This document shows positions 8,801-30,329 of a DNA stretch of 64,000 nucleotides, in pieces. Source of the DNA: Iphione sp. A-MEVVRFRX5 (taxonomy: Eukaryota). The notes beneath the pieces were generated by a model. The model saw nothing but the letters and a program-made list of their open reading frames with translations. It did not search any database and was not told where the DNA came from. Location of the stretch: NCBI GenBank assembly GCA_976226885.1, contig OZ320317.1, positions 93,496,001-93,560,000 on the forward strand, written 5' to 3'. The position numbers were made by a program, and so were the translations under genes. How positions within the stretch are numbered: position 1 is the stretch's first letter; every line of letters starts with the position of its first letter.

Positions 8801-9546
8801 TATCAATATAATACACATCAGGTTGCTCATGTGACAGAAATCTCTTGAACGAGATCTAAATTTCCTGCATATATGTATTTCACTAATGTTTTCTGTGGTT
8901 GGCCCTTACTAGCATTTTTTATGGTGTTGAGGGCCTCATTGATGGTCATGTCCCTTGCTTTATAGGGGCATTTTATCTCTACCAGGATGCAATCACCCCT
9001 GTGACACACTTTCCCATCTGGTGATCATGAAAGAAAGGGATAATTTGGGTTAACAATCAAACCGCCTTTGTGGAAGTAATACTCCACATTCATTTCCATG
9101 AATGCATCCTTCGCATGTGTTTCTGAAGATTTCCTATAGGATGTGCACATGTTTTAATTTCTCTCTTCTCTGACAATGACCTCAAGAATGCTTCTGTGAC
9201 CTCTTTCTTGTGTGAAATGATCCATGTAAATGTGAATGTGGTCAGGCACTTATTGTGTTCATCCCACCACCAAATGAAACTTGTTTGATCACAAGTGCTT
9301 TCCTCTAGATTTTAGGCTTCTTGTGTTGAGATTGCAAGATGTTTGTATGACGCTGTCGAAACTGGAAATATCTATAGGACACCCGCGTGGGAAGTTTAGG
9401 TTGCCACATTCATGACTTCCAGGGGTGTGGCATTCTGTGTCTGCTATGAATTCCGCCTGCAAATAAAATGTATTATTATAAAGGTAAGAGACACCAAAAC
9501 TCTGGAAGGCCAGTGTTGAATTAGGTGGTTTTATTTTGGCAGTAGT

Positions 9547-9586
9547 TTCCCAACGTTTCGTCAGTGTGTGTGACTTCTTCAGGGGA
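9547..9586 (-). ncRNA. Minimal type I hammerhead ribozyme (HHR1)
   Basis: Reverse strand TCCC-CTGAAGA-A-GTCA cacacac TGAC-GAAA-CG-TT-GGGA: core CUGANGA/GAAA, 4-bp stem II, palindromic ACGT helix III, stem I TCCC/GGGA. Confidence 0.85.
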
Positions 9587-9842
9587 TGTGGTTTGATTGT
9601 AAATGCTGTATAAGGTACCTTTGAGTGCAGTTTTTGATTTTCTGTGTTTATAAGGTACCCTCGAGTGCAGTGTTTGCCAATGTGTGTTAGTGGGTGTACT
9701 GATTTGTGTACCTGTACTGAAGTGCATGATTATATGCATATGTTACATCCGATGATTGATATTGTTTAACTATGTAACTTTATAAGGCAATAACAGAGAA
9801 AAAACTGTAATACGATTGTAAACAGTTCAATATTTGTGGGGA

Positions 9843-10442
9843 TTACATTCTTCTATTCGGCTTGATTAGTCCATAGCCTACCAAGGATCTTTTTAAGTCT
9901 TCACCTACATCTTGGTTTACCTTATCTATTATTGTCCACAAATCGAACAGTATTTCATTAGAAGGCACAAGGTTGTTACGAATATGATATCTGCCTCTGG
10001 GGCTTGGCCTATAAATTTCACTACTGATTGTCATGGGCTCAGGTACATATTCCTCATGAGAATTATGTGTAGTGGTTAGTAAGACCTCGCTGTCTCGTTT
10101 GGAGGTCTCTACGCTATCGATGTTGCTGCTGTTGTCTTCTGCAGGCCTCTCGGTGTTGGGTGCTGGTGTTGATGGTGGGGTTCGTTCAGAGTCCTCTTCC
10201 TCTTCTGTGCTGCTTGAGTCATCATCACTCTTGCTATCAGAATCCGACATCATCAAGTCTTCTTCCAAGTTGATGTACAGGCCATCATCGTCACTTGATT
10301 CAGGTAGCTGCACTATTCGTCGGGGGTGTTCTACTGTCGTCTTTCGATCTGGAACCACCAGCTTGGGGGATGATTTAGGGGACTTGCGCTTGACACCCAG
10401 TAATGGGTGTTGATGTCTGCCGGATTTGCGGACCGTCGGATC
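9843..10442 (-). CDS. PLE accessory ORF3 (acidic/disordered, conserved C-terminal helix), 5'-truncated
   Basis: Frame is open from the insertion junction (DPTVRKSGRH...GVKRKSPK) through ORF 9843..10358; ends NNLVPSNEILFDLWTIIDKVNQDVGEDLKRSLVGYGLIKPNRRM. Confidence 0.7.
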   Translation of the reverse strand, partial: DPTVRKSGRHQHPLLGVKRKSPKSSPKLVVPDRKTTVEHPRRIVQLPESSDDDGLYINLEEDLMMSDSDSKSDDDSSSTEEEEDSERTPPSTPAPNTERPAEDNSSNIDSVETSKRDSEVLLTTTHNSHEEYVPEPMTISSEIYRPSPRGRYHIRNNLVPSNEILFDLWTIIDKVNQDVGEDLKRSLVGYGLIKPNRRM

Positions 10443-10982
10443 AATGTATTATTAATGCTATCAATATAATACACAGGTTGCTCATGCGACGGAAATCTCA
10501 TGAATGAGATCTAAATTCCCTGCATATATGTATTTCACTGTTTTCTGCGGTTGGCCCTTACTAGCGTTTTTTTTTTATAGTGTTGAGGGCCTCATTGATG
10601 GTCATGTCCCTTGCTTTATAGGGGCATTTTATCTCCACCAGCATGCAATCAGGATGCAAAACATGTCTCTATGAGGAAAATGTATAGAGATATTAAAGGT
10701 TGAAGTGGGAGAGGTAATTCTTCTGATCTCAAACACCAGATGGCTACAAGCGCCATTGTTGAAATCAATTGTTTGGGGTGCACATGTCATATTTTCTTTT
10801 GTTGAATCATTGTTAATGAGTCAACCAAAAGGGATTTATGCATGTTTTTTGAAATTTTCATACAGAATATGTATATGTGCTGGAAATTGGGTTCTTGATT
10901 TGTACTATTTAAATAAATCTTAGAGTAGGAGGAACACACCAACACAAACACCAGAGATTCAATTTCAGTTGGCTTTTATAAA

Positions 10983-11020
10983 TTCCCAACGTTTCGGCAA
11001 TCTTAGCCTTCTTCAGGGGT
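10983..11020 (-). ncRNA. Minimal type I hammerhead ribozyme (HHR2)
   Basis: Reverse strand ACCC-CTGAAGA-A-GGC taagatt GCC-GAAA-CG-TT-GGGA. Confidence 0.85.
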
Positions 11021-11440
11021 AAACATACAACATTCTTGGTGAGCTTAAGTACCCATTTGGGCCGCTTTGGGGCCTCAGGTGCGGTCTATGCTAAAAATAG
11101 AACCGAGTCTCTATGTCTGAATATACTTGATTAAATCATCTGATATTACATGTAAACCTTGAGAATGTTCAATAAAATCATGTTACTTCAAAAATGCTGT
11201 CTTAATGTTGTGATTAAATATTAAAAAACTGGTCCATCTCTGGAAATAGTAAACAGTAACAAGTTCCGAAAATCGAATGTAAACAAGCTATCTATACTCC
11301 ACGGTATTGAACGCTCCTGACTTGGATAATATCACAGTCATCAAATATGGTTAATCACAGAGTATCGCATCTAAACTGAATCATAATACAGGCTGGATGA
11401 TCACAGATGGTAAGTAGTGTCAAGTTGAAAGATCAAACGG

Positions 11441-12229
11441 TTAAAAACGTTTCTGACGCATTACACCTTGTCTTAACATCTCCGCCTTCATAACTCTGCC
11501 GACTTCTTGATTTAACTTTTGAATTATTAGCCAGTGGTCATATAGTATTTCGTTACGCGGTATCAGTCCGTTATCGTAAGCTTTACTAGTACTGGCAAGA
11601 GGTTGTTTGTTATTAAGCTTATCTATCGGTGTCGGCACATATTCTGGTATGGGCTTGGGACGAGTGTACGGTCTGCTGAGCGGTACATACTCAGGGGTGC
11701 TGTCTCGGTCGTATTTGATCACACGTCGCTTGTCACCAGAAGCATCGATACGTGGGGGGGCCTGTCCTGTCGGATGGGTAGTCTTGACACGCTTGTCTTG
11801 GGTGTGTTGGTTGGGAGAGACACCGCGGTTGACCGTCCGTACTTCGGTGTGGTCGTGTAGGCGTTTGCTAATGCCCCCTTTTGAATTAAGGGCTGGTCTG
11901 GTAGGAGGAGGAATGTCACGCTTGGCAGTCAGACATATTGGGGCTGATTTAAATCGTGCATCACTTGTGCTGTTGTCATTATAAGAGTCAGTGTCGGTGC
12001 TGACGTCTAGATCTTGTTGTAGTTGGTGATCAGTGTCCGACTCGCTGTCCGAGTCGGATAGAACTCGAAGATGCTTGGTGGTCGGTACGTCCCGTTGCTT
12101 GGTGTGGGCTGCTATAGGTGCCGCTGGCTTAGGGGCGGCTGACTGCGGCGCTTGCGGTGCTTGTGAAGTCTGGTTCTGGGTGCCCGGTTGACGGCTGTTT
12201 GGCTCTGTGGACTTGCGCTTCTTTAACAT
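11441..12229 (-). CDS. PLE-A accessory ORF3, 262 aa, low complexity with KKRK motif and conserved C-terminal helical domain
   Basis: Intact ATG ORF; C-terminus DNGLIPRNEILYDHWLIIQKLNQEVGRVMKAEMLRQGVMRQKRF. Confidence 0.75.
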   Translation of the reverse strand: MLKKRKSTEPNSRQPGTQNQTSQAPQAPQSAAPKPAAPIAAHTKQRDVPTTKHLRVLSDSDSESDTDHQLQQDLDVSTDTDSYNDNSTSDARFKSAPICLTAKRDIPPPTRPALNSKGGISKRLHDHTEVRTVNRGVSPNQHTQDKRVKTTHPTGQAPPRIDASGDKRRVIKYDRDSTPEYVPLSRPYTRPKPIPEYVPTPIDKLNNKQPLASTSKAYDNGLIPRNEILYDHWLIIQKLNQEVGRVMKAEMLRQGVMRQKRF

Positions 12230-12755
12230 CTGGATGAGTGGGTGGAGATCTCTCTTGGTTTTGCGGGCGGTGGTGTCGATCTCTTCGTTTAAAGCGTCGG
12301 TGTTGCTCGTACTTGATTGCGATGTGAGGTGCCGGGCGGGTGCTGTAGCTTTGTTCGTCGGTGTACGGGTCGCCTGAGCCGTTGTGGCGGGTGCGGGGGT
12401 CCCTGTAAGAACACACGGCTGGGACAGTTCTGAATTTCACGTTGTTAGGTGTAATGGTACTATCGCGCCAGTATTGAGTCGGCTTAGGTCTTTTAACGAC
12501 TGTTGGAATTACATTGTTGGCAATTTCAAATTCGAACCCATGTGAGATCCGTTGATGTCTATGTAGGTTGCGTTTACTGATATACGAACGTCCACAAGAG
12601 CAGTAATATTTACCTATGCAAGTGCCGAAGTCAACATCGGGGCGGTCGGGGTGTGTTTTGTTCACGTGTTTGAGTAGGCTTCCCTCGTTCTTAAGGAGTT
12701 TCCGGCATATGGGACATCTTACCCAGTGAAACACTGGGCTTTTAGCATCTGCCAT
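12129..12755 (-). CDS. PLE-A accessory ORF2, 208 aa, two C2H2 zinc fingers plus basic disordered tail
   Basis: CPICRKLLKNEGSLLKHVNKTH and CSCGRSYISKRNLHRHQRISH; intact ATG ORF overlapping ORF3 by 101 nt. Confidence 0.8.
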   Translation of the reverse strand: MADAKSPVFHWVRCPICRKLLKNEGSLLKHVNKTHPDRPDVDFGTCIGKYYCSCGRSYISKRNLHRHQRISHGFEFEIANNVIPTVVKRPKPTQYWRDSTITPNNVKFRTVPAVCSYRDPRTRHNGSGDPYTDEQSYSTRPAPHIAIKYEQHRRFKRRDRHHRPQNQERSPPTHPDVKEAQVHRAKQPSTGHPEPDFTSTASAAVSRP

Positions 12756-12844
12756 TCTGTAGGATAACTGCGCAATTTGTAGAATTGTTGGTTTTCGTAG
12801 GTTTTGTCGTACTTGCGATCCGAAATCGTCTTACTGAAGTGGGT

Positions 12845-12916
12845 TGTTGGGCGGCTTTGTGAAGCTGGATGGATACGTCATCATGAATGTGTATGACGTC
12901 ATCGATTCGGTTGCTA
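12845..12916 (-). promoter_or_regulatory. Putative internal promoter between GIY-YIG and ZnF ORFs (CRE, half CRE, RFX half-site, GC box)
   Basis: TGACGTCA 12894-12901, ACGTCA 12875-12880, GTTGCTA 12910-12916, GGGCGG ~12850; function inferred only. Confidence 0.35.
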
Positions 12917-13573
12917 TAGTTTCCCGTTCATGCCATGGGGATTCCCAGTTTCCATGATGCGAATCCAGGCTTCCTCGAGCCTGAGACGTGTGTTTTTCGA
13001 TTTGGCAGATGAGTCGACTATTGTTATTAGGATGTCCTCAGCGGTAACATCGTGGTCTAGCAGATGTTTGATACACGGTGCTTCTCGTCTTTTGGTGTTT
13101 AGATTGTACTTATGTTCTCTGATGCGTAGTCTGACGGGTCGGCCTGTTTCTCTGATGTATTGGTAGCGGCATACTGGACATGTGAGCACGTAAACAGTGC
13201 TCGATGTTTCGCAGGTGTTGTGTCCGATGATTTTGTGTGTTTGCCTTGTGGTGGTTGATTGGATTGTAGAACTGTGTGTGATATGTTTGCAGGTTTTACA
13301 ACCGAACTGATAGCAGGGGAAGCTACCCGCTCGGGAAGGAGGTGGTGGTGGAAACTGCGATCGGCAGAGGATGTCGCGTAAGTTGAGTGTCCGTTTAAAG
13401 GCCACTAAGGGCCGATAAGCACTGACCACGGGGTTGTGGGTTTCAGTTACAAACATATGTGCACGCTTCAGGATTTCCCTCGTAACCCAATGTGTTTTGT
13501 GGTACTGTATGACAAAGGGGATAGCTTTGGTGTCCTTTGCTTTTTTCTTGACAAGTAGGTCAGATCTGTTCAT
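12914..13573 (-). CDS. PLE C-terminal region: thumb/linker, Cys-rich linker and GIY-YIG endonuclease (RT lost by 5' truncation)
   Basis: IPFVIQYH...AFKRTLNLRDIL...CYQFGCKTCKH...TCETSSTVYVLTCPVCRYQYIRETGR...RIREH...RLRLEEAWI...NPHGMN. Confidence 0.92.
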   Translation of the reverse strand: MNRSDLLVKKKAKDTKAIPFVIQYHKTHWVTREILKRAHMFVTETHNPVVSAYRPLVAFKRTLNLRDILCRSQFPPPPPSRAGSFPCYQFGCKTCKHITHSSTIQSTTTRQTHKIIGHNTCETSSTVYVLTCPVCRYQYIRETGRPVRLRIREHKYNLNTKRREAPCIKHLLDHDVTAEDILITIVDSSAKSKNTRLRLEEAWIRIMETGNPHGMNGKL

Positions 13574-14390
13574 ATTTTTTTATTTAAATAAATATTTGGG
13601 TTGAATTATTATGTATGTCACGTCAAAAACTGCCACGGTTAGAGTTGCAGTGCGCAGATCATCTCTCTTAGGGAAAATCTGAAAAATTGAATTGGCCAGC
13701 ATGGAAAATATGATTAAAACCTTTAAAGATAGAGGATAAGTACTGTACATTGATATTTGGTGGTTGTCATTCAAGAAATCATAGAAAACCCATCAGTAAA
13801 TTAACAAACAATGACTTGGCATGCGGTGTCCGAAAAACATGTAAATGGATGCCGATGTTAAGAGATATATGGAGCTTCATGTTGGATGCATAAGAAATAC
13901 AATGCCTTCCAGTAGGTCTGCAAATGATCTTAATTGAGGGAGGAAAATCGTGAACATTTACATGTATAAAATATTGCACAGTATTATTTCATAATTCTTG
14001 CTCTTGTGTAGTAAGCAAAATACAGTCCATCTGTATGTGAAGTGCCGTTCCTCTAATAGTGGAAATTTTACAATACAGGCTGAAACAACCACAAGGTCTC
14101 ATTGACTTGATAACATCCGCCCCATCTAGTTGAACAATCTACAGAACACCTTGGGCAGCTGCTAGGGTAAATAGCATTTAAACCTTATATCATGTATGGT
14201 TGCTCTATTTGGATGGAAATGCATGTTTTACATTCTAAGAGCCTGCGTGGTCAACTCCTGTAAAAAGGAGAAAGTCACAATTTCATTGAGACATGTAAGT
14301 TAACCAATGCATATGACTGGAGTAAACAAATATATATCAATACTCGTGCATCTGTACAGACTTAACATTTCCTCATGCTTCAACATGCAG

Positions 14391-15811: not shown

Positions 15812-15850
15812 GACTCGACGTTTCGGGCATTGATGTCCTTCATCAGGAGT
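15812..15850 (-). ncRNA. Minimal type I hammerhead ribozyme (HHR3), in an orphan PLE end fragment
   Basis: Reverse strand ACTC-CTGATGA-A-GGACAT ca ATGCCC-GAAA-CG-TC-GAGT; stem I ACTC/GAGT, GUC cleavage triplet. Confidence 0.85.
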
Positions 15851-16432: not shown

Positions 16433-17030
16433 TTACACTTGTTGTGGCCAGATGTGATCTACGTAGAAAGTATACAGCTTGGAGATCATTTCCTGCATTG
16501 TATTCAGGCAAGGTAGCATGACCTCGGCAAGCTGTTCTTTCTTTGTGTGCACTATGAAAGTGCATGAGGGTGCACCTGTCACCATCAACTGGCCCTGTAT
16601 TTGGTACAAGTAGTTGTGATTTATTTTCAAACGTTGTACATCTTTGTGCACTTCTAAGCAGCATTGTTTCATGGTTCTGATAGCCTCCTTAATTCTCATG
16701 TCCTGGTCTTCATAGAAGCATTTCACTTTGGCAATTCCTGTCACCCCATTGAAGCAGATCCTGCCATTGGGTGTTGCAGCCAAGAATGGATAGTTTGAAT
16801 TTACTACAACACTGATGTCATGAAAGTATTCACCCCTATGTGAAGACAGGTAATTGTCCTTAGCATATGCCTCATTCCTACGTCTGTACATGGTGGCTGG
16901 GGTATTTACGGCTTTGCCGTTCAATATGTTGGTGACTCAAGCCTCCGTTACTGGTGCATTTCGCTTCACAATGCTACCAAATTGTGAAGCTGTGATGTGT
17001 CTAGCATGGACCTGACGCCATCTTTGACAT
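16433..17030 (-). pseudogene. YqaJ-like exonuclease, second family
   Basis: WRQVHARHITASQFGSI...YPFLAATPNGR...KVKCFY...LKINHNYLYQIQGQLMVTG...FIVHT. Confidence 0.85.
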
Positions 17031-17319
17031 CTTGTTTTCAATACAAAATATAGGTATAACTATGTACGCAATCTTTATATATGCGAGCATAATACATGGT
17101 TGGGTGATATGATTTTTCAGGTGTATTACGTTACGATAGATGAGATGGGCAGACTGCCATACCCTAAACAGAAGAAATAAGTGCATCTTGAGAACAGCTG
17201 ATAGAACGTGACTGATGTTCTGGACATCCAGAAGGAAGGCATACAAGATACATCGCCATGTTGATGTCGACCTGCCCATGACAAATAAAGCACATAAACG
17301 TAACTAAGACACAGCTTCT

Positions 17320-20300
17320 CTACTTCTTCTGATTTCCATGCCTCCACCTGCACTTGTCAAATTGTGGTAAGTGCCACCTAGGAAACCAATTACGTTTGGC
17401 CTTGAGGCAAAGATGTAGCCCGTATTGTGGGTCAGAACAGCGGACATGACTCTTCACTTGATTTCCACGAAGAGTATAACAAACCTGGCAGTTTCTGCGA
17501 ACTTTCGTATACTCTGGGTCATGGGGACCAGTGCAATTTATGCTCTTCCTCCTTTTGAGTCTGGGGTTGTACAGGGGCACATCCTCATCATCAGCTATCC
17601 TGGCTAATTGGCGCACTAACTCCTCTCGGAAGTGCAAATGTGAATATCCTGAAATAAGTGTTTGTGAGACATCAACATGTTGAAATCATAGATATGCTAT
17701 TTTCACATATAATAAATTGCAAACAAGTAATTCCAATATGTAAGCTGTACACAAAAGTACATTTATGTTCACATGAAATTTTCAGAGGTTTCAATCAATC
17801 ATTGCTAAAAAGTACATACCCACATAACGTTTCAAACCAGGCACTTCAGGATGCTCGGCCCTCTACAGCTTGAACAGAATTAAACTGTTTAAGACCACCA
17901 GATCGTCCATGTGGAAGAACAGCGTCTTCCACCAACGACATGTCTTCACAAGACAATTATAGGCCTCTATCATCTGGTCCACGAGGTCGACCCCTACCAT
18001 GTGCTTGTTGTAGTAGTGCACACAAGAGGGGACTCGGGGGACTGATGGTTCATATTTCTTCTCCTTGTTTTTCCCATGCCTCACAACCAATATGCTTTGA
18101 TGGCCTTTGTGCATGGTCGACACCATGTTCACCATATTCTTGTCCATCCACTGTAGAAAGAGGATCTTTTTGAGCCTGACATAACGCATGTCTCCTCGAC
18201 GTGCAGCCTTGGGCCACTCCTTGTCCTTCAACACCTGAAAGACAAACAACTGAAGTGAGGCTCACATAAGAAATAAATGTTCATACAACAAATTCAATGA
18301 TGCATGTAAAGGGGGGAAATGTAAAAATGTTATATTTTGGCACACAGTGAGAAGTGAGTATTTCCGTACCACAGGGAACCCACGTCGCCATGGCTGCATA
18401 GTCCCACACAAGAAGGAACCATTTGCAAGTAGATGTTTTGCCAACTTCAGGGATGAGAAAAAAACTGTCACAATAGATATGGTATCCTTCATTGAAGTAG
18501 GGTCTAGTCATAGATGACACCACATCAAATCCCAGGCCATTAGGAGTACAGTCCTCTGACTTGCCAGTATAAACGCTGTAGGAAGGGAAGAGAAATTTTT
18601 CAGGTGCGTTCTGTGATAATTGACATTTAAAGCAGTAAACTGATATGTAACAGGAAAGGTTCACAAATGGCTCATGGGTTACAGATAGTTTTCATCGAGT
18701 AAAACACAGGTTCTGACATTAATTATTTTTAATGTTTAACAGTATTTTTGTACACACAGAGACTGATTCACCTGAAGTTCAGTGTATATCCAGTTGCAGC
18801 GTCGCACGCACACCACAATTTGTATCCAAACCTTGTTGGTTTGTCTGGCATGTACTGTTTTATTGGGGAACGCCCTTTGGATCTTACCATACGTTCGTCA
18901 ACAGGCACACATTTGTAAGGCTGGAAGTTCCGGGCACACATACTTTTCATATGATTTAGTAATGGCCTTATTTTGGCGAGCTTGTCATATGGGTCTTCCT
19001 CTCCGGGTTTGGAAATATGTAGCATGCCATTCAATGCTTTACATCTGAAACGGACGATGTATTTAAGAAAAAAGATATTATAGACTTCTATGTATCTTTT
19101 TCAGAATTTCCAAGTCAAATTTACTTCAAATACCCAAACCTGTATACTAACAATGCATGACCTGCCTCTACATTAGAATTATACTTCATCATATAGGTAT
19201 CCATTGAATGCACACCTCTTTCATCATGAAATATATAACATGAGGTTCATAGGCCTTAGCATACCTATTCTTGGAGAGGAATCGTCTGGACCAGCCACCG
19301 GAATACAGCGTGGCCTGCGACCAGTTTCGCTCAATGTCTGCACGCCCCGTAAAACCGTTGAAAATCAGGAGGGCAATCATATGCTTTATTTCCTGTGGGC
19401 ATGTATCCTCCCAGGAACCATCCCTCTTAGCATATGAGGTTTTGTCATGAATGTTTAACCATGCGTAGAGATTTGTATTGTCAGCAATCAACTGAAATAT
19501 CAAATAAAAATTTCTTTCAACAAACCGTCCCCTTCAGTTGTGATTTCACTACAAAGTTGAATTTCATATGAGATATATAACTAACCCTATCCAGGCGGCG
19601 AATGCCTGCAGGCACTCCCTTGTAAATGACGGCAAATGCCTGCAGGCATTCCCGTGCAAACGCCGGGTGATGCCTTGAGGCATTGTCTTAAATGTCATTG
19701 TTATAATGAATTTTCATAGAAATAATGCTTAGATTTTGATGATATTTGGATCAAATGTAAATAAATAGTCATACATTATTCTAGTATATACAAAAATAAT
19801 GAATTCTGAAGGGAACATGAGATTTTCCCTTTAAAACTGCCATATGTCCATGTTTTTACATAGGAAACGAGTGACAAACAAGGTAAATTACATACCTGAT
19901 ATGAAATTCCAAGTAATATTCTCAAATAAATGCATATTTCTGCCCTAAAAGTCCTTAGAAATGTATATCCACGCTCAATTCTCCTTAGGTAATTGAATAA
20001 ATGCTATGTTGGATACCTTGAAACACTCCAAATCGTCAGTGCGTACAAAAAGCATCAAAATTAACCCCGCTCTGTAAGTCCATGACGTATCGTCAGGTGC
20101 CGCCTGGATAGGGCTAAATATTTAAAAATTTAATCAACCAGTTGCTGCGATCATTTGTATACAAGCCATGAAGAAGGGAAAGTTGTGACAGCGCCATATG
20201 AGCCAAACTGCATTGGGCCTTACAATGGGTACATTCTAGTATGAATTAGTAGATATACCTCGATTATGTCATCCCCCAAGAACAATTCTAAGAAATCAAT

Positions 20301-21102: not shown

Positions 21103-22076
21103 TTAAACATCTCAAACTGTCTTCTAAGCCCCTACCCCTAGAATCAGAGAGTATGAGAGGCCATCTACAACAAGAAATGGACCCTATATGTCACATCATG
21201 ACAAATATGAAAGCAAGGAACTTGACAAAATTCATTTATGTTAAAAGAATGCAAATGCCGGTAAACAATTGATTGTACTTACAATAGTTAGGTTTATAGA
21301 AACAGAGGAGGATCGTGGAACGAAGAAATCACACACATTAGACGAAGGAAATTGGACAAGTGAAATGTGCAACGTCTGTTACGTGAAGCAAAGCATTTAC
21401 ATAACTCTGCATGATAAAGTAGGAGAAAAAACTAACAATTTCCCATCAGCAATGGTGCCTCTCGCATTAGGAAATGAGATGTCACAGTGTAGTATTGCAA
21501 AAGAGGTGAGTCAGACGGCACATTGACAGGAAGGAAGGAAAATGACCCACAAGGTAAACAATTACAAAAAAGATGATATACACTGCTTGGTACATGGAAA
21601 GCAACTTACCTGGTTTAAAGAAGGATAAGCCAAGTCGAAAATGTAATCTATAATGGAAGTGCGAAGGCATAATATTATTACCAAGGGAAGCCACAAGGAT
21701 CTTCAACAAGAAGCATTCATAAAAAATAATACTGAAAAGTATGGACTACCTAGGTACCATTAAGCAAAATGAAAAATAATCACATACAGTTGAAATGCTA
21801 CGTGTGAAAAGTGATCTTTTTGCATCTATGCACTAATGCAAGGTCCCATTATAATTAGATGAAGGTCCCAACTAGTGTTAACCTTTTGTCAGGCACGGAT
21901 TAATTTCCACCACTTGATCCACTTAGTTCAGAAAAGAATCATTACAAAATGTTAATATTACAGATGTAATCATAGGGCATCGTGAAGTGGCATATGGCAA
22001 TATTAAACTTTAGATGATTTTAGAGATGAGCACGCTAACAACACACTGAAGTATGTTTTAAGACAGTTTTAATCAA

Positions 22077-22120
22077 AATCCCAACGTTTCGGCGTACAAT
22101 CGGTGCCTTCTTCAGGGTTC
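22077..22120 (-). ncRNA. Minimal type I hammerhead ribozyme (HHR4), weak stem I
   Basis: Reverse strand AACC-CTGAAGA-A-GGC accgattgtac GCC-GAAA-CG-TT-GGGAT. Confidence 0.7.
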
Positions 22121-23663
22121 AATATGACAATAGAACTTTGCACAACATATTTGAATACAAAACTTTTTCAAAAGATAACCCACCAATTCAATCGGGAATG
22201 ATAGAGTTGTAAGTAGAAATTGTGTAGTTCTCAAGGAAGTTTTCTGTACTGAAATTAAAATTCAAAATTGAAATAAATGTTGTTAAATTCAGATTGATGC
22301 AGATTAAATATCATCATTACTAAAAAAAAATTAGCAAGGTTTTGTTTCCTGTTGCAAGAATAACAATCATATCATCTGAGACATTAATACATATGATAAG
22401 TATATTATATAATTTAAATAAGACTACACTGCACCTGAAAACCAATTAAATAACGTAGGACTGAGGACATAAACTCAGAACCATTTCAAAAAATATATTT
22501 GTAACAAAATGTTTCAACACAATACATGGGTACATCTCAGAAACAAATGACACAAACACTTACCAATATATAAAAGTAAAGCGATGTTAATAACAGGAAT
22601 GGAGACCAATTTAAACTTTCACAGAAGACAACTAGAAATTAAAAAAAAGATCATGTAGGTTGGACTACACCAGGCAGTACAGATAATACTGTACTCAAGC
22701 TTGTATGACCAGCCTCTAACTTTATTGCAAATGGAATTATTCACATATGACCACAGACTGCAATGAAATCTGCAATGTGGTACTCGGATTCATAATGAGC
22801 ATGACAATTCAAAAATCCCCGCCATAAGACCTGGGTGGGGAGGCAGCAGCAAAGCCGTGGAAGGGCGAGTGACTCAATCCCTGCAGCACCTCATCTACCA
22901 TCCTGGGGCTTACCTCTGGGGAGACCATGTCGAGGTGCGACTCATCAGACAATGGCGACGCGGGCGGAGGAGGCAAGTTTCGGCTGGAGGAGGGCTTGGT
23001 TGTCGGGCACACTGGCCGCACAGAAATTTTGGCGAGATGGTCTGGCTTGTACAGTTGCACATGACCCGGTGCTGGGATGTATAGAGGCGCATCTAGCACT
23101 GGGTACAGACCAAAGATGCGGATGGTAGGACGCGGAGTGCCAACATGTAACAAATGATAATAGTAGTCCGGCTGCTAGGTTCTGAAAGGAAAGGAAGGGA
23201 AAATACTTTTTATCTGTGTCACACCACCAGTCAGAAGTCAGAACTGGGAACGGGGAATGCCAACCTGGCAACAAAGGCCTGCTCCAGTGACTGGATAACT
23301 CCCTTCCAGGAGTGGCCCTGAAGACAGGGAACAGCAACCAGCTGTTGGAACTGTTAACAGGATTTCCTGGCTCTTGGGAAGGCACTACCTGTCATCCATA
23401 GGAGGGTAGCCAACCAGCTCATCAGGTAAGAACAATCCCTCATGGGATAGTCCAGTCAAGTGGAAGGGTACACCCAAGGAAACTACCCCCCCGGATGTTT
23501 TTGGTTGTCCACTTTCGAATATGCTCTATTACCAGGCACCGCTAAAATAGGAAAGTGATAGTATCATAAATCTAGATATAAGGGATGTGCAATATGTGTG
23601 TTTGCTGGTTAATCATTGAATGATAATTAACGAGATGTCATCTGAAGCATATAAAGCATCTAT

Positions 23664-25107
23664 TCATGGCATGTTCCTTATGTAATTCGACATTGCTTTT
23701 CTGTCAGCCAACTTGGTAGCACCTAAATACAGCTTCATAGCTTGAACAGATCTATGACCTGTGATTGACTGTTTCTTATCGCATGAATATCCAGCATGGT
23801 CCAAAGAGGAAACCACAGTTTGCCGGATGCAGTGGTTTGTGTAATGTTTTGAAAGGTTTGCCTCTTTGGACATGCTGGACATCATATTGTTCAACGTGTT
23901 TATTCCTAAGACCTGATTATCATACCAGATTCCGTCCACCTCGAATTTTACTTTCGGCCTCTGAAAGAAAGCTGCATTACTTTGGTGAAGTTTTCCCATG
24001 TACTTTTTGAAGTGTCTAACCTGGCAGTCAGCAGGGTTCTTTGTATTCGAATACATTATTTTCTTCGTATCATCTTTGTCATCGCGATTACCTTGTCTAG
24101 TTTTTTCATGTTCATGGTGGGACATTGTAACATATTCCACCCCTTGACTATCCTCCTTGACAACAAAGGAATCTCTACACAACCCTCTTAAGCCTTCTTG
24201 ACCCCTCCTCCCGAAATGAAGCATTAGCTCAAAGAACACATGTCATTGTAAGCCTTTGGGGTCATCTGTAAATAATTCAACATACATTTTCTTAACATCC
24301 TCCTCCTCGATCATTGCTTTGTGGCTAGTCTTGTCCAACCCTTCTTTTTTAATTTTACACATATAACCTTCATAATTAAGGTTGGCCTGCTTAAAAAACG
24401 CATCTTTTGTAATGTCAAATGTCCTGCAATAAGGCGGATTTACTAAATGGCATTGCAGGCCTGACCTGAGATTTCTTAGGGCGCTCTTCGAGTACAGTCA
24501 GCCATCTTTTGTTCTGATCAATGTATGAGCACCTCATCCTCCATAGATTTGAATTCTGCTACTTCACCCACTGCAATGAGCCATTCTGCAATTAGAATTT
24601 GATTTTTGTAAGTCCCTTTCTGTCAAATATGCAACGAAATTCAAGAAACACCCATGGAAATTTTTTAGGAAATTGACCATATTGAACCTCTCCAAAAAAT
24701 AATATATTTAACCCTTGTATTTACCTGTAAATAAGCATACAGCCCAACGTGTCTGGGCTTCGGTGGTTGCCGAAATTCTGTTTTTCTTCATGGCATCTAC
24801 CTCAGATTCCACCGGATTCAAGAAACAGCTGTTGCCATCAGTTGCACCTTGCTCTATGTTCGTCTTGTTAGCGCAATCTGAAAAACGCATAAATCGGTCT
24901 TAAGGGGGTTTTTTTGTTGTTTTTCATATAAACTGTATTAATGCAAGCAATTCCAGTTATTTCAATTTTTTTCTTAAACTTATACGTACCAAACAAATCC
25001 ATCATGTCCCTATCAAAATCGCCAAGATCAGTGGCTTCTTCGAAATTAGCTGCAGTGAGCTGTTCGGCTGATGCGGTAACCTTTTCATCTGTGGCTACAT
25101 CCACCAA
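23664..25107 (-). mobile_element. Crypton tyrosine-recombinase element, copy 2
   Basis: ORF 23664..24239: LHFGRRGQEGLRGL...FFQRP...WYDNQVLGINTL...YTNHCIRQTVVS...ITGHRSVQAMKLY; upstream fragments at 24240-24600, 24708..24890 and 24868..25107. Confidence 0.9.
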
Positions 25108-26190
25108 ATCACAAAAATCAATTTGGAAAAATTGTGGCCTGTAGATAGATACGATCCTTTATAAGGAATCCTTAAAATAAACCAACTGATCCATTGTGAA
25201 TGCTCCCATCTTGGCAGACAGGAATTAATGAACGCCTTTTTTAATACCACGTGGTTGAAATCGACCAATCGTTGTGTGTTATTATGTAAACATCCGGTTC
25301 CATTTGTTTACTTCCTGTTTACGCTTGTTTGATATGTCAACTCGAAAATGGCGTTTTCTAATTTTTTGGGAGCTTCACCCTTTACTAGCATACATTTCAA
25401 TTGAAGGTGTCATTAAATCACATCACAATTTCCACTTTATTAATTTTTAAAAATGTATTTTTCATTTTTTCCGTCTTTTTCTTCCTGAATCGAGAGGTGC
25501 GGCAGCCATTTTAAATGCTTCATTTTAGAATGTTTTCGTACAAACTATTTAAGCCAATACATTTTCATTTTACATATTCTTGCCCGTGTTTAGGTCGCAT
25601 CAGACCAAAACATGCCTTTGGTAATGCTGGGAGATAGGACGATCATAGCCAGCCATGTTAGAACACAGATTTACTTTTACACTTACATTGTCATAACATG
25701 GTTGATGATTGGAAACATGAGCCATCTACATTTGTGTTATTTTCCAAGCAAATGTGCAAAAATACATGAAATTTACTGCTCAGTGCCCGTTATTATATAC
25801 ATATTTCAAATATTTGCCATAATGACATCTAAATATATATAATTCCTGTACATGATTTGTATAATCTATATGAAACACGGTTAGAAATATTGCATGAAGG
25901 CAATGCTTTTAAAATGCAATTACATACAAATCTTGTCTGATTTTGAGGTATCCCACCTTTTGTTAACATGACTATTTGTATCTACTAACTGTAAGAAGTT
26001 ACAATACAATTCTTGTAATGTAAATGCTGAAAAGTATCTTAACATGTTTCTTTAAAAATTTGTTAAGTACAAGCGTCCACTTGACGTAAGAATTTGACTC
26101 TGGGGTGCAGTGGCGATGGCATATGCAGGAATTCTTTTTGAACTAGATGTATACAAGGGAAGCAATGTTGTAAGCCTCTGCTGAGTCAGA

Positions 26191-26940
26191 TTAGGAACTG
26201 TTAACAAGGAACGGTTCAAAATTGGACAACATGCTGCAAATGAACCAAATCTGATTGAATTAAGTCATCCCAACAATGTCGACCTTATTTGTTATGATCT
26301 TGAAGTTTTTGATTCTTGTGATCATCTTCTCCACTGACACAGGATACTGGGCGATTTTAGTTGTTAGGCGCACCTCACTGTTAGTTAGTTGAATTGCACT
26401 GGATGCTCGTGGTGGTATATTGAGTCTTAGGCCCAATTCTTCTATTTTGTCATGTATGGTAAAGCCCTTATTGGCCATGAACCCGTCACGTTTGTTGATG
26501 AACCCAGAGTCCATGTGGGCTTTCACAAGATCGTAAAACCTGCACTCCTTCGTTAGTTGTTTGTCAGATACGCTACCTGAAAAAAGGTACATGATTGCTC
26601 CTCTTGGATCACAGACTATCAGCCCTTTTAGTGTTAGAGCAGGCGTGTACTCAGAGAACACCTGAGACTGACATAACATGGATCTGGACTTCTGTATTCT
26701 GATTTCACTGTCGTCTGGTATCACTAACGTTTCTGGGAAATCTCCCTTTTCTAGCATCTTCTTAATAATCCCATCCCTGTGTGGCCAAAAGCAAATCTCA
26801 ATTAAACAGAAATACATGAAGGAAATCCAGCTTGTAAAGATGAGTGATGAGTCCCGAGGTGAGATATTAAATTTGAAGGCCAGATCCTTGCAGTTGACAT
26901 ATATTTCATTAAATTTTTACAAAATTTACATAAATTCATA
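26191..26940 (-). pseudogene. ISL2EU-type (DDE_Tnp_4/Harbinger-related) transposase, 5' part cut off at PLE-B
   Basis: DLAFKFNISP...FTSWISFMY...WP...IPDDSEIRIQK...SGSVSDKQLT...MANKGFTI...LNIPP...IAQYPVSVEKMITRIKNFKII...QIWFICSMLSNF. Confidence 0.85.
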
Positions 26941-27019
26941 CTGACTGTGGAATAGCCAATCCAACTCCAAGATGTTCTATGTTTGGGATTTTATTGTGAC
27001 TTATGCATTGAGTAGACTG

Positions 27020-27060
27020 ATGCGACGTTTCGTCCCTTTCACTGGGACTTCATCAGGCAA
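27020..27060 (-). ncRNA. Minimal type I hammerhead ribozyme (HHR5)
   Basis: Reverse strand TGC-CTGATGA-A-GTCCC agtgaaa GGGAC-GAAA-CG-TC-GCA; 5-bp stem II, GUC triplet. Confidence 0.9.
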
Positions 27061-27393
27061 AGTGACCAAAACATATGCTGACATTCATAATTTCAACTTT
27101 TTCCCTGGTAACGGTTGCCAGGTAGTGTGTATGACTTGTAACAAGTGATCTGATTGGTTGAAACAAATTCATTGTAAAATTTGTACTAATTACTGTTAAC
27201 GGATCAAATAAATTGGTAAATTTAATCTACAATTGCTGTCTTATAAGGCTATATTCACGTGGAACATCTATGCTGGTTTGAATCTGGAATAGAACACTAA
27301 AATGATTCTGGAACGGTAATAATGATGGATAGACCCACACAAGTATATTTCATTAGTTGTGGGGTAAATTACTGAGTCCTTCATGAGAGTGTC

Positions 27394-27927
27394 TTATAAT
27401 ATTGACCTGGCATAAAGAAAGTTTAAAAAATCTGCATATAGTTCATCATCAAGTTCTGATAAAATTAGCAATAAACCCCTCAGTGCTCTGTCCCCCATAC
27501 GAGGATAAGGGTTAGGAGGCAGCGGACGTGGAAAGCCTACAAAATCCATTGTCTCTGTCTGAGCATTCTTCATCATGGGGGCTGTCTGTTTGTGTTTGCT
27601 GGTGTAATATGCAGGTATGGTCTGTACTCCCACGCCATTGGTTGATATGATAGAGGTGCCACTGCTCGAGGAACTGTCTGTACTGTTGTCATGTTTCGAA
27701 CTCCCACTTGAATTTGAACTGGAGCTGGATGAATCATCAGCTCCTGGAGTCTTGGGTGTGGTAGTCTTGTCGTTGGTGACTCCATCCTTGTTTTCGACAT
27801 CCTTCCTGTCCGGTGGGACATCGTCGTCACTGGATATATCAAAGTCTTCTGACAGAGCAATGTTTAGGTCAACCGTCACTGTATTCTTCTTTGGCTGATG
27901 GTCGTCTATATCATCTTGAAATTGCAT
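27394..27927 (-). CDS. PLE-B accessory ORF3, 177 aa, acidic/Ser-rich with C-terminal amphipathic helix
   Basis: Intact ATG ORF; C-terminus DRALRGLLLILSELDDELYADFLNFLYARSIL has the same hydrophobic register as ORF3 of PLE-A and PLE-C. Confidence 0.7.
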   Translation of the reverse strand: MQFQDDIDDHQPKKNTVTVDLNIALSEDFDISSDDDVPPDRKDVENKDGVTNDKTTTPKTPGADDSSSSSSNSSGSSKHDNSTDSSSSSGTSIISTNGVGVQTIPAYYTSKHKQTAPMMKNAQTETMDFVGFPRPLPPNPYPRMGDRALRGLLLILSELDDELYADFLNFLYARSIL

Positions 27928-27948
27928 TGGCGGGCTGACTACCCCTAC

Positions 27949-28514
27949 TTAGTCACAGTCCACCGCCTGGGTGGTACTAGTTGTGGGCGGATCTTCATAT
28001 AAGACTCTCACAGGTGATAACAATGATTTGGTATCAGTAGTTAAATGTTCATTCAATTTATAGGCTACGCATTGTAATGTCATTTTGGTACTTAGATAAT
28101 GTTCATCAGCTAGCGGTGTGGAACTGCATATAGGTGAAGGCAGAGTTGAGCCATGGTTTACATAATCGACTATCACCGTGGCCAGATCCTTCTCATTTTG
28201 TGTTAGTTGTACTGTATTGATGGCATTCATTCTTCCTAACCTGGCCTTCTTCCCAGCTGGTTCTAGAAGGGGGTTGTCTAAGCCTCTTGCTTCTAGTCTT
28301 GGATCGAACTGGACTGTATCCTTCTTCTTGTTTGAGTGAATATTTCGAATATGGCGAAGTAGAGTGGCCCTTGAGGCTGTGTTTTTCCACATAGCTTGCA
28401 GTTACATTTCGTGTCCGATGATGTGTGTTTTAGTGTTATATGTCGTTTCAGAGAGCGATCTCCATAGAATATTAGTTTGCATTCAGGGCACATAACGATA
28501 TTGTCCTTGTCCAT
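27949..28514 (-). pseudogene. PLE-B accessory ORF2, two C2H2 zinc fingers, one frameshift
   Basis: CPECKLIFYGDRSLKRHITLKH and CKLCGKT/(fs)SRATLLRHIRNIH across ORFs 28293..28514 and 27949..28392. Confidence 0.78.
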
Positions 28515-28519
28515 GTTAT

Positions 28520-28610
28520 TGCCGGCGGACGTCTGCAGTTACAGTGGACACAATGTTAATGTTCAAACTGGTTGCTAGGTGACGTGATGGCATGGCATCA
28601 TGACATCATG
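28520..28610 (-). promoter_or_regulatory. Putative internal promoter (RFX X-box plus CRE-like sites) upstream of the ZnF ORF
   Basis: GTTGCTAGGTGAC 28571-28583, TGACGTG 28580-28586, TGACATCA 28601-28608. Confidence 0.35.
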
Positions 28611-28693
28611 TTGAAGGTCAACAGTTTTGGCGCCAGGCTCTGTCTCGGATTCGGGTGTCGTGTCCTATGTCTTATGTTGTGAGTCTCAGTGTT

Positions 28694-30197
28694 CTATTCC
28701 CTGATGTTCAGACCAGTGGGCCGATAAGTGCCCAATACACGTATCCATGCTTCTTCTAGTCGAAGTCTGGTGTTCAGAAGTGTTCCTGTAGTATCGAAAT
28801 GTTGGATTCTAACGTTAGAGATTGTGCAAGGGTGAGTGTTGAAGTGAATGGCTACAGGTTTGATGATGCGGTAGTTGCGAACATCGCCTAAGTGTTGCAA
28901 CAGTCTGGTGTGTATGCTGTTGCTAGTCTGACCTATGTAGATTCTACCACAATTTTTGCAGGAAATAGCATATACCACATTTGTGGTATCGCATGTGGCA
29001 TGTCCAACCGTGTGTACAAGCTGGTTGGTTTTTCGGACTTTTTATAGTCTTAGATTAAATGATCCGGTGACAGGTGCTGCATCCTCTTTGACATTTGTAA
29101 GTACCTGGTGCCTTCCTTAGATAGGGGAATTCTGATTTTGTAAGTATGTCTCTCAAGTTAGCCCCCTTCCTAAATGCTACCAGCATCCTGTGTTTGAGAA
29201 GTTCTGTGTTGTGGTGCGATGTGGACAGAATTGTTCTGGCTTGATTCAAGGAGTCTCGAACATAATGTTCATCTCTTCTTTAGTATTGAATGATGAAGGG
29301 GATCACTGGGGTGTCTTCCTTGTGTTTGGTTTGCAGGAGTTCTGTCCTTGATATCTTCGCAACTTTTTGGTATGTGGATAGGAGCAGTTGATTCCAGTAA
29401 CCTCGGTGTTTGAAGTAGCCTAGCATTCTCCGAGCTTCTTGGTCAAAGTGTTTTCTGCTGCTACAGATCATTTTGATTCTTAGCAATTGACTGTATGGGA
29501 TAGATCTGCGCTGGTTGCTTGGGTGGTGTGAGGTGTAGTGTAAGTAGAGGTGTGCATCTGTTGTCTTGCAGTAGAGCTTAGTCTTCACTCGGCTGTCCTC
29601 CCCTCGGTAAACCGTGGTATCCAGAAAGTTGATACTCTCCTTGCTGTGTTCCTCCGTGAACTTGATTGACGGATGTTGAGTGTTCAGATATTGAATGAAT
29701 TTGTGGTACTCGTCTTCCGGTCCTGGGTGTATCATAAAGACATCATCAATAAATCTGAGCCAGGTCTTCGGTTTGGTGGGTGCATTTCTGAGGAGGTCTG
29801 ATTCTAATTTCCCCATAAACAGACTGGCATATGTCGGGGCCGTTGTAGTTCCCATCGCTGTCCCTTTTATTTGTTGGAAGTATCTATTGTTGAATTTGAA
29901 GGTATTCTTAGTGAGTATTAGCAACATCAGACTTAGTATCATCCATGTATGTGGTTCGTCAGTGGTTCTGCTTAATAGTTTCTCCTTGGCGGCCAAAATG
30001 CCTTCACGATGGGGTATGTTTGTGTACAGGGCACTGATGTCAACAGTTGCCAGGATGTCCTGTGGTTCTAGTTCGATGTCTTGTGTTTTGTTTATAAAAT
30101 CTTTGGTGTCTTTTATATAACTAGGTAGTGCGGGAACGAATGGTCTGAGTACTTTGTCTACATATTGGAATATTAATTTGGTTGGACAATTACCCAT
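28694..30197 (-). pseudogene. PLE reverse transcriptase plus GIY-YIG endonuclease, 5'-truncated, frameshifted
   Basis: DISALYTNIP, GTAMGTTTAPTYASLFMG, WLRFIDD, INFLD, YLHYTSHHP...SIPYSQLLRI; then VVYAISCKNCGRIYIGQT...RLLQH...RLRLEEAWI. Confidence 0.95.
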
Positions 30198-30329
30198 AAT
30201 ACAGTTTGGTCAGTTTTTATAAAATCAGCTAAATTTTGTACACTTCTTAAAGACTTGTACTGTTTATTTATCCTAGAAGTAGAAATCTAAACATTACTTG
30301 AGCCTCTTAAGCCTGCAGGCGGTCTGGAA

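Follow-up and report, generated by a model that had tools for sequence, protein, structure and literature searches.

Penelope-like elements (PLEs) with an endonuclease are, in the literature we could search, described as single-ORF retroelements. [quoted passage not shown] 2021, PMC8557442) the reverse transcriptase (RT) is followed by a CX2-5CxxC linker and a GIY-YIG endonuclease (EN) with a CCHH motif; a minimal hammerhead lies in the 3′ repeat, and target-site duplications (TSDs) of variable length, 5′ truncation, a tail, tandem or pLTR arrangements and intron retention are all on record. Elements with several ORFs and hammerhead motifs are found among the Athena PLEs and Terminons (Gladyshev & Arkhipova 2007; Arkhipova et al. 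2017), but these lack EN – or associate with it only sporadically – and are telomeric, with reverse-complement telomeric repeats. An additional zinc-binding ORF, together with a canonical 3′ hammerhead, is present in Chlamys-2_cBra (PMC8557442); that ORF, however, is upstream and encodes a gag-like CCHC knuckle, in an N-terminal-EN element of a green alga. Finally, Penelope elements of Adineta vaga mobilise intron-containing host genes (PMC3846280): these genes are framed by PLE terminal sequences and TSDs and keep their introns through retrotransposition, but they replace the RT-EN and are moved in trans as sporadic events.

Here we analyse a window of 64,000 nucleotides from Iphione sp. A-MEVVRFRX5 (assembly GCA_976226885.1, contig OZ320317.1, positions 93,496,001 to 93,560,000; positions below are those of the window). 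A preliminary description, made from the sequence alone, proposed that three PLEs of this window (A, B and C) carry a conserved two-gene accessory cassette – a zinc-finger ORF2 and an ORF3 – between GIY-YIG and the hammerhead, and inferred a lineage of three-gene Neptune-like PLEs. We confirm the arrangement that was observed; the interpretation is only partly supported. The elements described here have a C-terminal EN of animal type, are dispersed and have TSDs, and differ from the single-ORF description of the Neptune and Nematis clades in that a second conserved gene of about 1.1-1.3 kb, with its own putative promoter and intron, lies between EN and the 3′ pLTR. The gene lies downstream of EN, encodes a small C2H2 protein that was not matched to anything described, coexists with RT-EN and is conserved across PLE lineages and datasets.

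Results

All three elements lie on the minus strand. PLE-A (10919-13580) is a 5′-truncated insertion flanked by a 13-bp TSD (ATTTATTTAAATA, at 13581-13593 and 10906-10918), and homology with full-length relatives starts at 13580 and ends at about 10908-10923. PLE-C (9479-10442) is likewise 5′-truncated and has a 12-bp TSD (TAATAATACATT, at 10443-10454 and 9467-9478). In both cases the borders are exactly those given in the preliminary description, and its claim that the accessory coding region moves with the element holds. PLE-B (~26945-30200) is a decayed copy whose 3′ end is approximate and for which no TSD was found.

The truncated RT-EN region of PLE-A (12914-13580; ORF at 12914-13573) holds the RT C-terminus, a C-x4-C-x2-C linker and the GIY-YIG domain with CCHH, and shares 95% amino acid identity with full-length relatives. 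The linker and the CCHH motif fit a Neptune/Nematis-type endonuclease as defined in PMC8557442; assignment to Neptune, or to any clade, by RT phylogeny was not attempted, and the note's Neptune label is thus unsupported at that level. A spacer (12756-12913) separates this region from ORF2 (12129-12755; 208 aa as read from unspliced RNA), which is overlapped by ORF3 (11441-12229). Pfam returned C2H2 hits to ORF2, but these stay below its cut-offs (zf-C2H2_4 at 3.8e-5). A 3′UTR (11020-11440), a minimal hammerhead (10985-11019, core 10989-11016) and a tail (10919-10984) complete the element, the tail containing a poly(A)-signal variant TATAAA (10975-10980) and a GU-rich element (about 10930-10955).

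PLE-C is truncated inside the accessory gene (9843-10442; ORF3 fragment at 9843-10358), retaining the ORF3-type acidic region, the EYVP motif and the C-terminal helices, followed by a hammerhead (9549-9585, core pattern at 9553-9582) and a tail (9479-9548) with AATAAA (9530-9535). A profile of A-lineage ORF3 matches PLE-C at E 4e-41 over profile positions 40-260, but PLE-C is itself a member of that alignment and the match is not independent; independent support comes from tblastn of its ORF3 against A-lineage loci (E 1e-8 to 1e-12).

In PLE-B the RT-linker-GIY-YIG region (28694-30197) survives in three ORF pieces (29280-30197, RVT_1 at 8.8e-10; 29055-29249; and 28694-28978, GIY-YIG at 7.8e-7), where intact relatives have ORFs of 770-790 aa. 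The spacer (28515-28693) holds degenerate CRE-like sites (TGATGTCA, CACGTCAC). The accessory region (27394-28514) is broken into 28293-28514 (with the zinc finger), 27949-28392 and 27394-27927: what had been read as separate ORF2 and ORF3 are pieces of a single ORF, interrupted by one frameshift and one in-frame stop. Intact relatives have one open frame of 350-460 aa, and no intron signals were found. The hammerhead is at 27021-27059 (core pattern at 27025-27056) and the tail (26945-27020) contains AATAAA (26990-26995). A further correction concerns the 3′UTRs, which are about 260-425 nt rather than 330-420 nt.

The hammerhead pattern CTGANGA-N8-30-GAAACGT gave five hits, all on the minus strand, against none expected from shuffled sequence. 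In PLE-A the order is CCC, CUGAAGA, a bulged A, GGC..GCC, GAAA, CG, UU, the cleavage site and GGG; helix II of PLE-C is GUCA/UGAC, covarying with GGC/GCC of PLE-A, while PLE-B has helix I UGC/GCA and helix II GUCCC/GGGAC. The hammerhead models of Rfam do not score these sequences, which fits the minimal, dimer-type PLE hammerhead (Cervera & de la Pena 2014, PMC4209133).

Among the outcomes named in advance as fatal to the preliminary claim were homologues mostly unlinked to PLE RT, a one-off 3′ transduction absent from other copies, and dN/dS near 1. Linkage was first examined across the genome, where at least 146 ORF3 and at least 150 ORF2 matches were scored out of 980 and 629 candidates, many of them open. 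The order RT, CX4CxxC linker, GIY-YIG, ~160-nt spacer, ORF2, ORF3, hammerhead holds in 60 further loci, and the accessory region is linked to RT and EN in nearly every locus examined; lineage B and a third lineage show the same order by coordinates. The region is thus an integral part of these PLEs and not a one-off transduction, and it is intact in young families whose copies are 99.4-99.6% identical. Finally, dN/dS is 0.03-0.22 for the N-terminal part of ORF2 and 0.08-0.17 for ORF3, similar to GIY-YIG (0.06-0.07), indicating purifying selection.

The accessory region also occurs in at least four other public datasets next to PLE GIY-YIG or RT-EN; in other datasets 30 ORF3-type clusters were found. 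One foreign contig (L065) holds an RT-EN of 675 aa (RVT_1, GIY-YIG) followed by the gene; in another (L064), whose element is RT-deleted, the gene lies inside the element between 300-nt pLTR repeats.

Several features of lineage A pointed to one gene rather than two. ORF3 lies in the +1 frame in all 11 A-lineage copies analysed for frame and in foreign contigs L063-L068. A donor – G|GTAAAT in this genome, GTAAGT or GTGAGT in foreign contigs – is kept even where the encoded residues change (S-K, G-E, G to S), and an acceptor, (Y)nYAG|R, is kept in 28 of 28 loci. The segment so bounded is 211-226 nt long and its length is 1 mod 3 in 27 of 27. Removing it in silico joins the start of ORF2 to ORF3 in 16 of 16 copies, five of them from other public datasets, giving a single ORF of 325-384 aa.

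In PLE-A the putative exon 1 (12614-12755) contains the start codon and the first C2H2 finger (dN/dS 0.02-0.11). The putative retained intron (12403-12613; 211 nt, phase 1, from G|GTAAAT to CTTACAG|G) encodes, when read in the ORF2 frame, the second C2H2 finger and an NV(K/R)FR...YR motif, and is itself under coding constraint in that frame (w 0.04-0.38). The coding part of the putative exon 2 (11441-12402, ORF3 frame) comprises a P/T-rich stretch, DTTARKTKRDLHPL, acidic SDSDSESD motifs, EYVP repeats and C-terminal helices; the spliced ORF would be 367 aa. AF2 places the C-terminal helices at residues 63-77 and 79-92, with the ten-residue blocks 71-80 and 81-90 averaging pLDDT 97 and 96. Purifying selection switches frame exactly at the acceptor: beyond it the tail of ORF2 is not conserved, w in the ORF2 frame being 1.4-2.0 in three of four measurable pairs (0.59 in the pair L025/L028), against 0.20-0.33 in the ORF3 frame in the three unsaturated pairs.

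The spacer of PLE-A holds a palindromic CRE (TGACGTCA, 12894-12901), a second TGACG, a GCCCAA motif and an Inr-like TCAGT, conserved across subfamilies whose synonymous sites are saturated; we infer an internal Pol II promoter. The CRE occurs once, at the spacer, in 44 of 58 own-genome loci, and is also present in foreign contigs L064, L065 and L067. At the other end, a poly(A) hexamer lies within 60 nt of the cleavage site – mostly 8-13 nt after it – in 35 of 35 tails, against 8% in controls, and in most families the tail holds a GU-rich element.

Between lineages A and B the layout is shared, but only the first zinc finger is detectably similar (hhalign E 3.7e-6). The C-terminal part of B does not match the A/C-type domain when tested independently (E 0.17).

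Discussion

Our data show that a second gene travels inside these GIY-YIG PLEs – within the TSDs and through 5′ truncation – that it is linked to RT-EN in nearly all copies examined, that it is intact in recently active families, and that it evolves under purifying selection. What follows is inferred from sequence, for lineage A and for relatives in other datasets, and we hold it with reasonable though not full confidence: ORF2 and ORF3 are one transcription unit, with a CRE/CCAAT/Inr-like promoter in the ~160-nt spacer, a first exon encoding the first finger, a phase-1 intron, and a second exon read in the +1 frame that encodes an RKKxRxxHP motif, acidic Ser/Asp stretches resembling SUMO-interaction motifs, EYVP repeats and a confidently predicted C-terminal helix pair. 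The 3′UTR would contain the hammerhead, followed within the 65-80-nt tail by the poly(A) hexamer and, in most families, the GU-rich element. In this view unspliced RNA would give a short two-finger protein, the retained intron supplying the second finger and a basic NVRF..YR motif before reading runs into an unselected tail, whereas spliced RNA would give the protein of 325-384 aa. Copies keep the intron, as PLEs are established to do (PMC8557442), so that the unspliced RNA would be the transposition template. Lineage B carries a positionally equivalent, intron-less single ORF.

Certain observations sit less comfortably with this account. The donor in this genome (GTAAAT) is weaker than the consensus, and because the putative intron is under coding constraint retention may be the main state. 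No RNA data were obtained, and splicing, the transcription start and the poly(A) site are therefore inferences; moreover, the CRE could serve the whole element rather than an internal promoter. In contig L061 the same donor and acceptor exist, yet ORF3 is in frame with ORF2, and splicing there would truncate the protein. The absence of intron signals in lineage B, and of detectable homology between its C-terminal part and that of A, also counts against this account.

As to function, we tentatively suggest a nucleic-acid-binding RNP cofactor of the element, analogous in role to LINE ORF1p or gag. As with these, a retroelement would encode a second protein of nucleic-acid-binding type, and alternative splicing from one unit recalls complex retroviruses. 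Nothing tested here bears on the function: the AF2 model of ORF2 was poor, no fold match was found and the complex test gave no answer. The position downstream of RT is different, there is no coiled-coil/RRM/CCHC architecture, and no homology was detected.

An unlikely alternative is that ORF2 and ORF3 are joined by a programmed +1 ribosomal frameshift just after the conserved Tyr-Arg codons (UAY AGG/AGA), giving a full fusion (finger 1, finger 2, NVRF, ORF3) colinear with the in-frame proteins of lineage B and contig L061. In-frame fused homologues do exist, the +1 relation is universal in the split lineages, an AGG or AGA codon sits at the junction as in Ty1-type sites, and the segment between the putative splice sites is under coding constraint. 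But a frameshift explains neither the canonical GTAAGT, GTGAGT or GTAAAT about 215 nt upstream, conserved at the nucleotide level while the amino acids change, nor the pyrimidine-rich YAG context at the junction; furthermore, no shared slippery heptamer was found, the P-site codon being UAC, UAU, UCC or UGC.

It is similarly doubtful that the gene is passive cargo, that is, a host gene captured with its promoter, intron and poly(A) signal between EN and the 3′ repeat and playing no part in transposition. The gene-like anatomy and the precedent in A. vaga (PMC3846280) favour such a reading. Against it, the gene is kept with low dN/dS across subfamilies whose synonymous sites are saturated and across at least four other datasets, always next to PLE EN, and the RT-deleted element of L064 keeps it. 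Ancient capture followed by co-option is possible, and is compatible with the account we prefer. No PLE-free homologue was found: two word-indexed searches returned no hits at all, and every hit of the profile search whose context was examined lay in PLE-type DNA.

Least likely is the two-gene model of the preliminary description, with ORF3 translated from its own AUG (MLKKR) by reinitiation or leaky scanning: although that Met is nearly invariant in lineage A and both ORFs are open and under selection, the conserved peptide DTTARKTKRDLHPLVQ lies upstream of it with no AUG before it in most subfamilies, L029 has Ile at the position of the Met, constraint in the ORF3 frame starts at the acceptor, 173 nt before the Met, and in other lineages the same motif is internal to a longer ORF.

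The elements and their classification

The observation made in the preliminary description holds: the region carries three co-oriented Penelope-like elements (PLEs) on the minus strand, and the coordinates proposed for them are accurate. PLE-A contains an open piece comprising the RT C-terminus, linker and GIY-YIG domain (12914-13573), a zinc-finger ORF2 (12129-12755) and ORF3 (11441-12229). PLE-B contains RT and GIY-YIG, followed by a ZnF piece and two further pieces, while PLE-C keeps only an ORF3-type frame. PLE-A is flanked by a 13-bp target-site duplication (TSD) and PLE-C by one of 12 bp, in both cases exactly at the proposed borders. Similarity of PLE-A to full-length relatives starts at 13580 and stops at about 10908-10923. 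Variable-length TSDs, together with truncation points that lie in the RT C-terminus (PLE-A) and in ORF3 (PLE-C), are as expected of 5′-truncated products of target-primed reverse transcription. BLASTP failed to align ORF3 of PLE-A with that of PLE-C because of composition, but tblastn showed the homology; a match to the ORF3 HMM is not independent evidence, because PLE-C is a member of the underlying alignment.

Each element ends in CUGANGA...GAAACGU, a pattern that occurs five times in the window, always on the minus strand, against none in 100 shuffles. The pattern search was used because Rfam models, whether at gathering thresholds or at E up to 10, found no hammerhead. The anatomy is nevertheless that of the minimal, dimer-type PLE hammerhead described by Cervera & de la Pena (PMC4209133): a short helix I, a bulged A 5′ of helix II, the GAAA motif and a helix III reduced to the palindrome ACGU. 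Helices I and II covary between lineages, with CCC/GGG against UGC/GCA in the former, and GGC/GCC against GUCA/UGAC against GUCCC/GGGAC in the latter. Of the remaining occurrences, one lies within an insertion of 114 nt (22011-22124, minus strand) made only of hammerhead plus tail and 78% identical to the PLE family of loci L025 and L026 from this genome: an extremely 5′-truncated copy. The fifth hammerhead (15818-15846, minus strand; helix I CACUC/GAGU) has AATAAA 54 nt downstream, shows no similarity to any fetched PLE locus and has no ORF3-type frame upstream, and so belongs to another PLE or retrozyme family.

The features that define EN+ PLEs with a C-terminal GIY-YIG endonuclease are largely present. 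A reverse transcriptase domain is recognized in PLE-B (RVT_1, 8.8e-10) and in L065, a contig from another dataset (RVT_1, 1.7e-9), which reads ...KPADKGG... and hence carries the DKG motif; RVT_1 is a generic model, and no PLE-specific RT model was applied. The GIY-YIG domain scores 7.8e-7 in PLE-B and 9.6e-5 in L065 against Pfam, and PLE-A reads VYVLTCPVCRYQYIRET...H...H, in accord with the CCHH arrangement in which the two Cys lie between GIY and YIG (PMC8557442). The linker is C-x4-C-x2-C in PLE-A (CYQFGCKTC), C-x3-C-x2-C in PLE-B and C-x4-C-x2-C in L065; linker and CCHH motif thus satisfy the Neptune/Nematis endonuclease criteria. Placement in either clade by RT phylogeny was not tested: reference families from Repbase or Dfam were not compared, and full-length RT sequences and 5′ ends from this genome were not examined. 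Athena and Terminon multi-ORF PLEs are endonuclease-deficient, telomere-associated and bear reverse-complement telomeric repeats; in the elements considered here the endonuclease is present, and the insertions are dispersed and have TSDs.

Evidence on pLTRs and tandem arrangement is mixed. Contig L064, from another dataset, has 300-nt direct repeats carrying the hammerhead, and in this genome (G000) three GIY-YIG matches inside ORFs of 684-791 aa are spaced 4743 and 4739 nt apart (contig C1, 172102226-172111986, plus strand): a head-to-tail PLE array, the period of which fits RT-EN plus the accessory gene plus UTRs. The copies in the window, however, are truncated and show neither arrangement, and the matter is left undecided. 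The one feature clearly at odds with the class is the expectation of a single ORF encoding RT and EN, for here a second conserved gene follows EN. Papers recovered by our literature search describe canonical EN+ PLEs as single-ORF, although Repbase and Dfam were not consulted. We therefore treat these elements as PLEs of a recognized class that differ in the possession of this gene.

Linkage and selection

The accessory coding region is part of the element. The assembly (1.18 Gb) gave at least 146 scored ORF3 matches and at least 150 scored ORF2 matches, out of 980 and 629 candidates respectively; the two are adjacent to each other and many have no stop. The preliminary description had recognized that its reading would fail if the accessory ORFs were mostly unlinked to RT, were missing from other copies, or evolved with dN/dS near 1. 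In the 60 loci fetched, tblastn placed RT, linker, GIY-YIG, ORF2, ORF3 and the hammerhead in the same order and spacing almost everywhere, and some families are 99.4-99.6% identical between copies. For pairs that are not saturated, dN/dS is 0.03-0.22 for the N-terminal part of ORF2 and 0.08-0.17 for ORF3, compared with 0.06-0.07 for the endonuclease. For the lineage to which PLE-B belongs, coordinates show GIY-YIG inside ORFs of 770-790 aa, followed 190-390 nt later by the ZnF, in at least 20 copies, while a third lineage has the ZnF about 90 nt after EN.

The arrangement extends to other datasets. A profile of ORF3 found 30 clusters, the best at 4e-10, and contigs encoding them come from Logan assemblies of ERR14368249, ERR14368245 and SRR14906797, and from ENA ERZ25767047. 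They show the end of a PLE GIY-YIG, or an RT-EN of 675 aa (RVT_1 plus GIY-YIG), directly upstream of a two-finger ORF and an ORF3-type ORF. Searches of a word-indexed collection with the ORF2 and ORF3 alignments returned no hits, but this says little given the nature of the index. In L064 the 300-nt direct repeats begin after the ORF3 stop; the gene is therefore internal, and not part of the pLTR. L064 (3962-7295) is an RT-deleted derivative that keeps an N-terminal ORF of 194 aa and the complete accessory gene, with two CREs, and is possibly a non-autonomous element that retains the accessory gene. In L065 (1-260), a near-full-length PLE, the N-terminal conserved region (frame 1) and the RT (frame 3) overlap in a -1 relation.

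A probable single accessory gene rather than two

The interpretation offered in the preliminary description – a cassette of two accessory genes – is only partly supported: the coding region is integral to the elements, but ORF2 and ORF3 are better read as one gene. In all 11 A-lineage copies analysed for frame, ORF3 is in the +1 frame relative to ORF2, opening just where ORF2 reads C-T-Y-R, and the same +1 relation holds in contigs L063-L068 from other datasets. A conserved peptide (DTTARKTKRDLHPLVQ) lies upstream of the first AUG of that frame and corresponds to D-P-T-I-R-K-K-x-R-x-x-H-P in the foreign proteins. Lineage B aside, at the junction every lineage has a pyrimidine-rich tract ending in YAG|R, and about 215 nt upstream, at the G-K-Y/F motif before finger 2, every lineage has G|GTAAAT (this genome), or GTAAGT or GTGAGT (foreign contigs), a signal that is kept even where the residues differ (S-K, G-E, G to S).

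The segment so bounded has the borders, pyrimidine tract and length expected of a spliceosomal intron. It measures 211-226 nt; among own-genome loci 27 of 28 keep GT, 28 of 28 keep AG, and the length is 1 mod 3 in 27 of 27. Joining the two sites in silico gives an uninterrupted ORF of 325-384 aa in 16 of 16 natural copies. In the window copy the result is exon 1 at 12614-12755, the putative intron at 12403-12613 and the coding part of exon 2 at 11441-12402, for a product of 367 aa. Selection agrees: exon 1 has w 0.02-0.11 and the segment read as ORF2 has w 0.04-0.38, whereas after the acceptor the ORF2 frame has w 1.4-2.0 in three of four measurable pairs (0.59 in the pair L025/L028) and the ORF3 frame has w 0.20-0.33 in the three unsaturated pairs. 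A search for short introns downstream of the Tyr-Arg site found nothing conserved.

PLEs retain introns through retrotransposition (PMC8557442), and the copies examined here keep the segment: patterns for two families matched the unspliced junction 14 times and the spliced junction not once, so that no spliced retrocopy was found for either, and with no RNA data at hand splicing itself was not observed. The main rival to the intron is a +1 ribosomal frameshift between ORF2 and ORF3, but this does not explain the donor.

There are exceptions. Lineage B has one continuous ORF of 350-460 aa and no intron signals, the copy in the window being broken by a frameshift and an in-frame stop. Contig L061 keeps both splice-like sites but has ORF3 in frame with ORF2. 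Moreover, only finger 1 of PLE-B resembles that of PLE-A (E 3.7e-6); an independent HMM test of the PLE-B C-terminus against the A/C-type domain was not significant.

Putative expression signals

The spacer between EN and ORF2 is alignable across subfamilies in which synonymous sites are saturated. It holds TGACGTCA, a second TGACG, GCCCAA and an Inr-like TCAGT/TTAGA. The CRE occurs once, at this place, in 44 of 58 own-genome loci, and also in L064 (twice), L065 and L067, the last likewise a contig from another dataset. All 35 distinct tails have AATAAA, ATTAAA or TATAAA within 60 nt of the hammerhead cleavage site, mostly 8-13 nt after it, against a control rate of 8%, and most families then have a GU-rich run. 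Copies extend past that signal, from which we infer that the transposition template is a read-through RNA, a view that fits the internal initiation of reverse transcription and the "tail" described for a Poseidon element (PMC11167929).

The predicted protein and its possible roles

Finger hits are of C2H2, zf-met and JAZ type; in the L061 protein zf-met scores 1.7e-8. AF2 gives a confident C-terminal helix pair (pLDDT above 90), but the model for ORF2 was poor (pLDDT 49) and was not used for structural searches. A Foldseek search of the C-terminal model against the PDB found nothing at E up to 0.001, the ESM Atlas returned only generic C2H2 clusters, and modelling of a complex between the RT-EN of L065 and the C-terminal domain was uninformative. 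ORF3 carries two stretches (11900-12060, minus strand, and homologues) of the type [VIL][LIV]SDSDS[ED]SD and DLxVSxDSDSD, which resemble CK2-dependent SUMO-interaction motifs, as in Daxx; this resemblance was not tested.

The placement of the gene within the element, its linkage to RT-EN and its conservation under purifying selection come directly from the sequence comparisons, whereas the promoter, the splicing event and the poly(A) site are inferred from sequence signals, and a role as an RNP cofactor is no more than our best guess, without a test of function behind it. A more far-reaching possibility, which our data do not exclude but which we consider unlikely, is that a lineage of PLEs has evolved a gene-expression programme like that of a complex retrovirus, with an internal CRE-driven promoter and one alternatively retained coding intron used to make two accessory proteins from a single downstream gene. 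The long isoform, with its basic RKKxRxxHP motif, acidic SIM-like stretches and Leu/Ile-rich C-terminal helix pair, could in this view act on the fate of the intron-containing element RNA, for example by nuclear export or protection (a Rev-like role), or could counteract host SUMO- or piRNA-based silencing.

PLEs are the least understood class of eukaryotic retrotransposons, and current descriptions, along with the only in-vitro system (PMC11167929), treat the RT-EN polyprotein as their sole product. A conserved, selected second gene in abundant and recently active families would mean that PLE RNPs may need, or benefit from, a dedicated cofactor, and that annotation pipelines expecting a single ORF of ~2 kb would mis-delimit these families. 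It would also provide a natural example of a retroelement carrying an intron that is both coding and apparently spliced, which bears on the question of why PLEs retain introns, and would offer testable cis elements – the CRE, the splice sites and the poly(A) signal – next to the enigmatic hammerhead.

Genomic surroundings

The PLEs are surrounded by ORFs of other mobile elements on the minus strand (16433-19503, 8827-9009 and 23664-24239), namely piggyBac-like transposase pieces, YqaJ-like exonuclease pieces and a tyrosine-recombinase-like ORF; the region is a nest of transposable elements.
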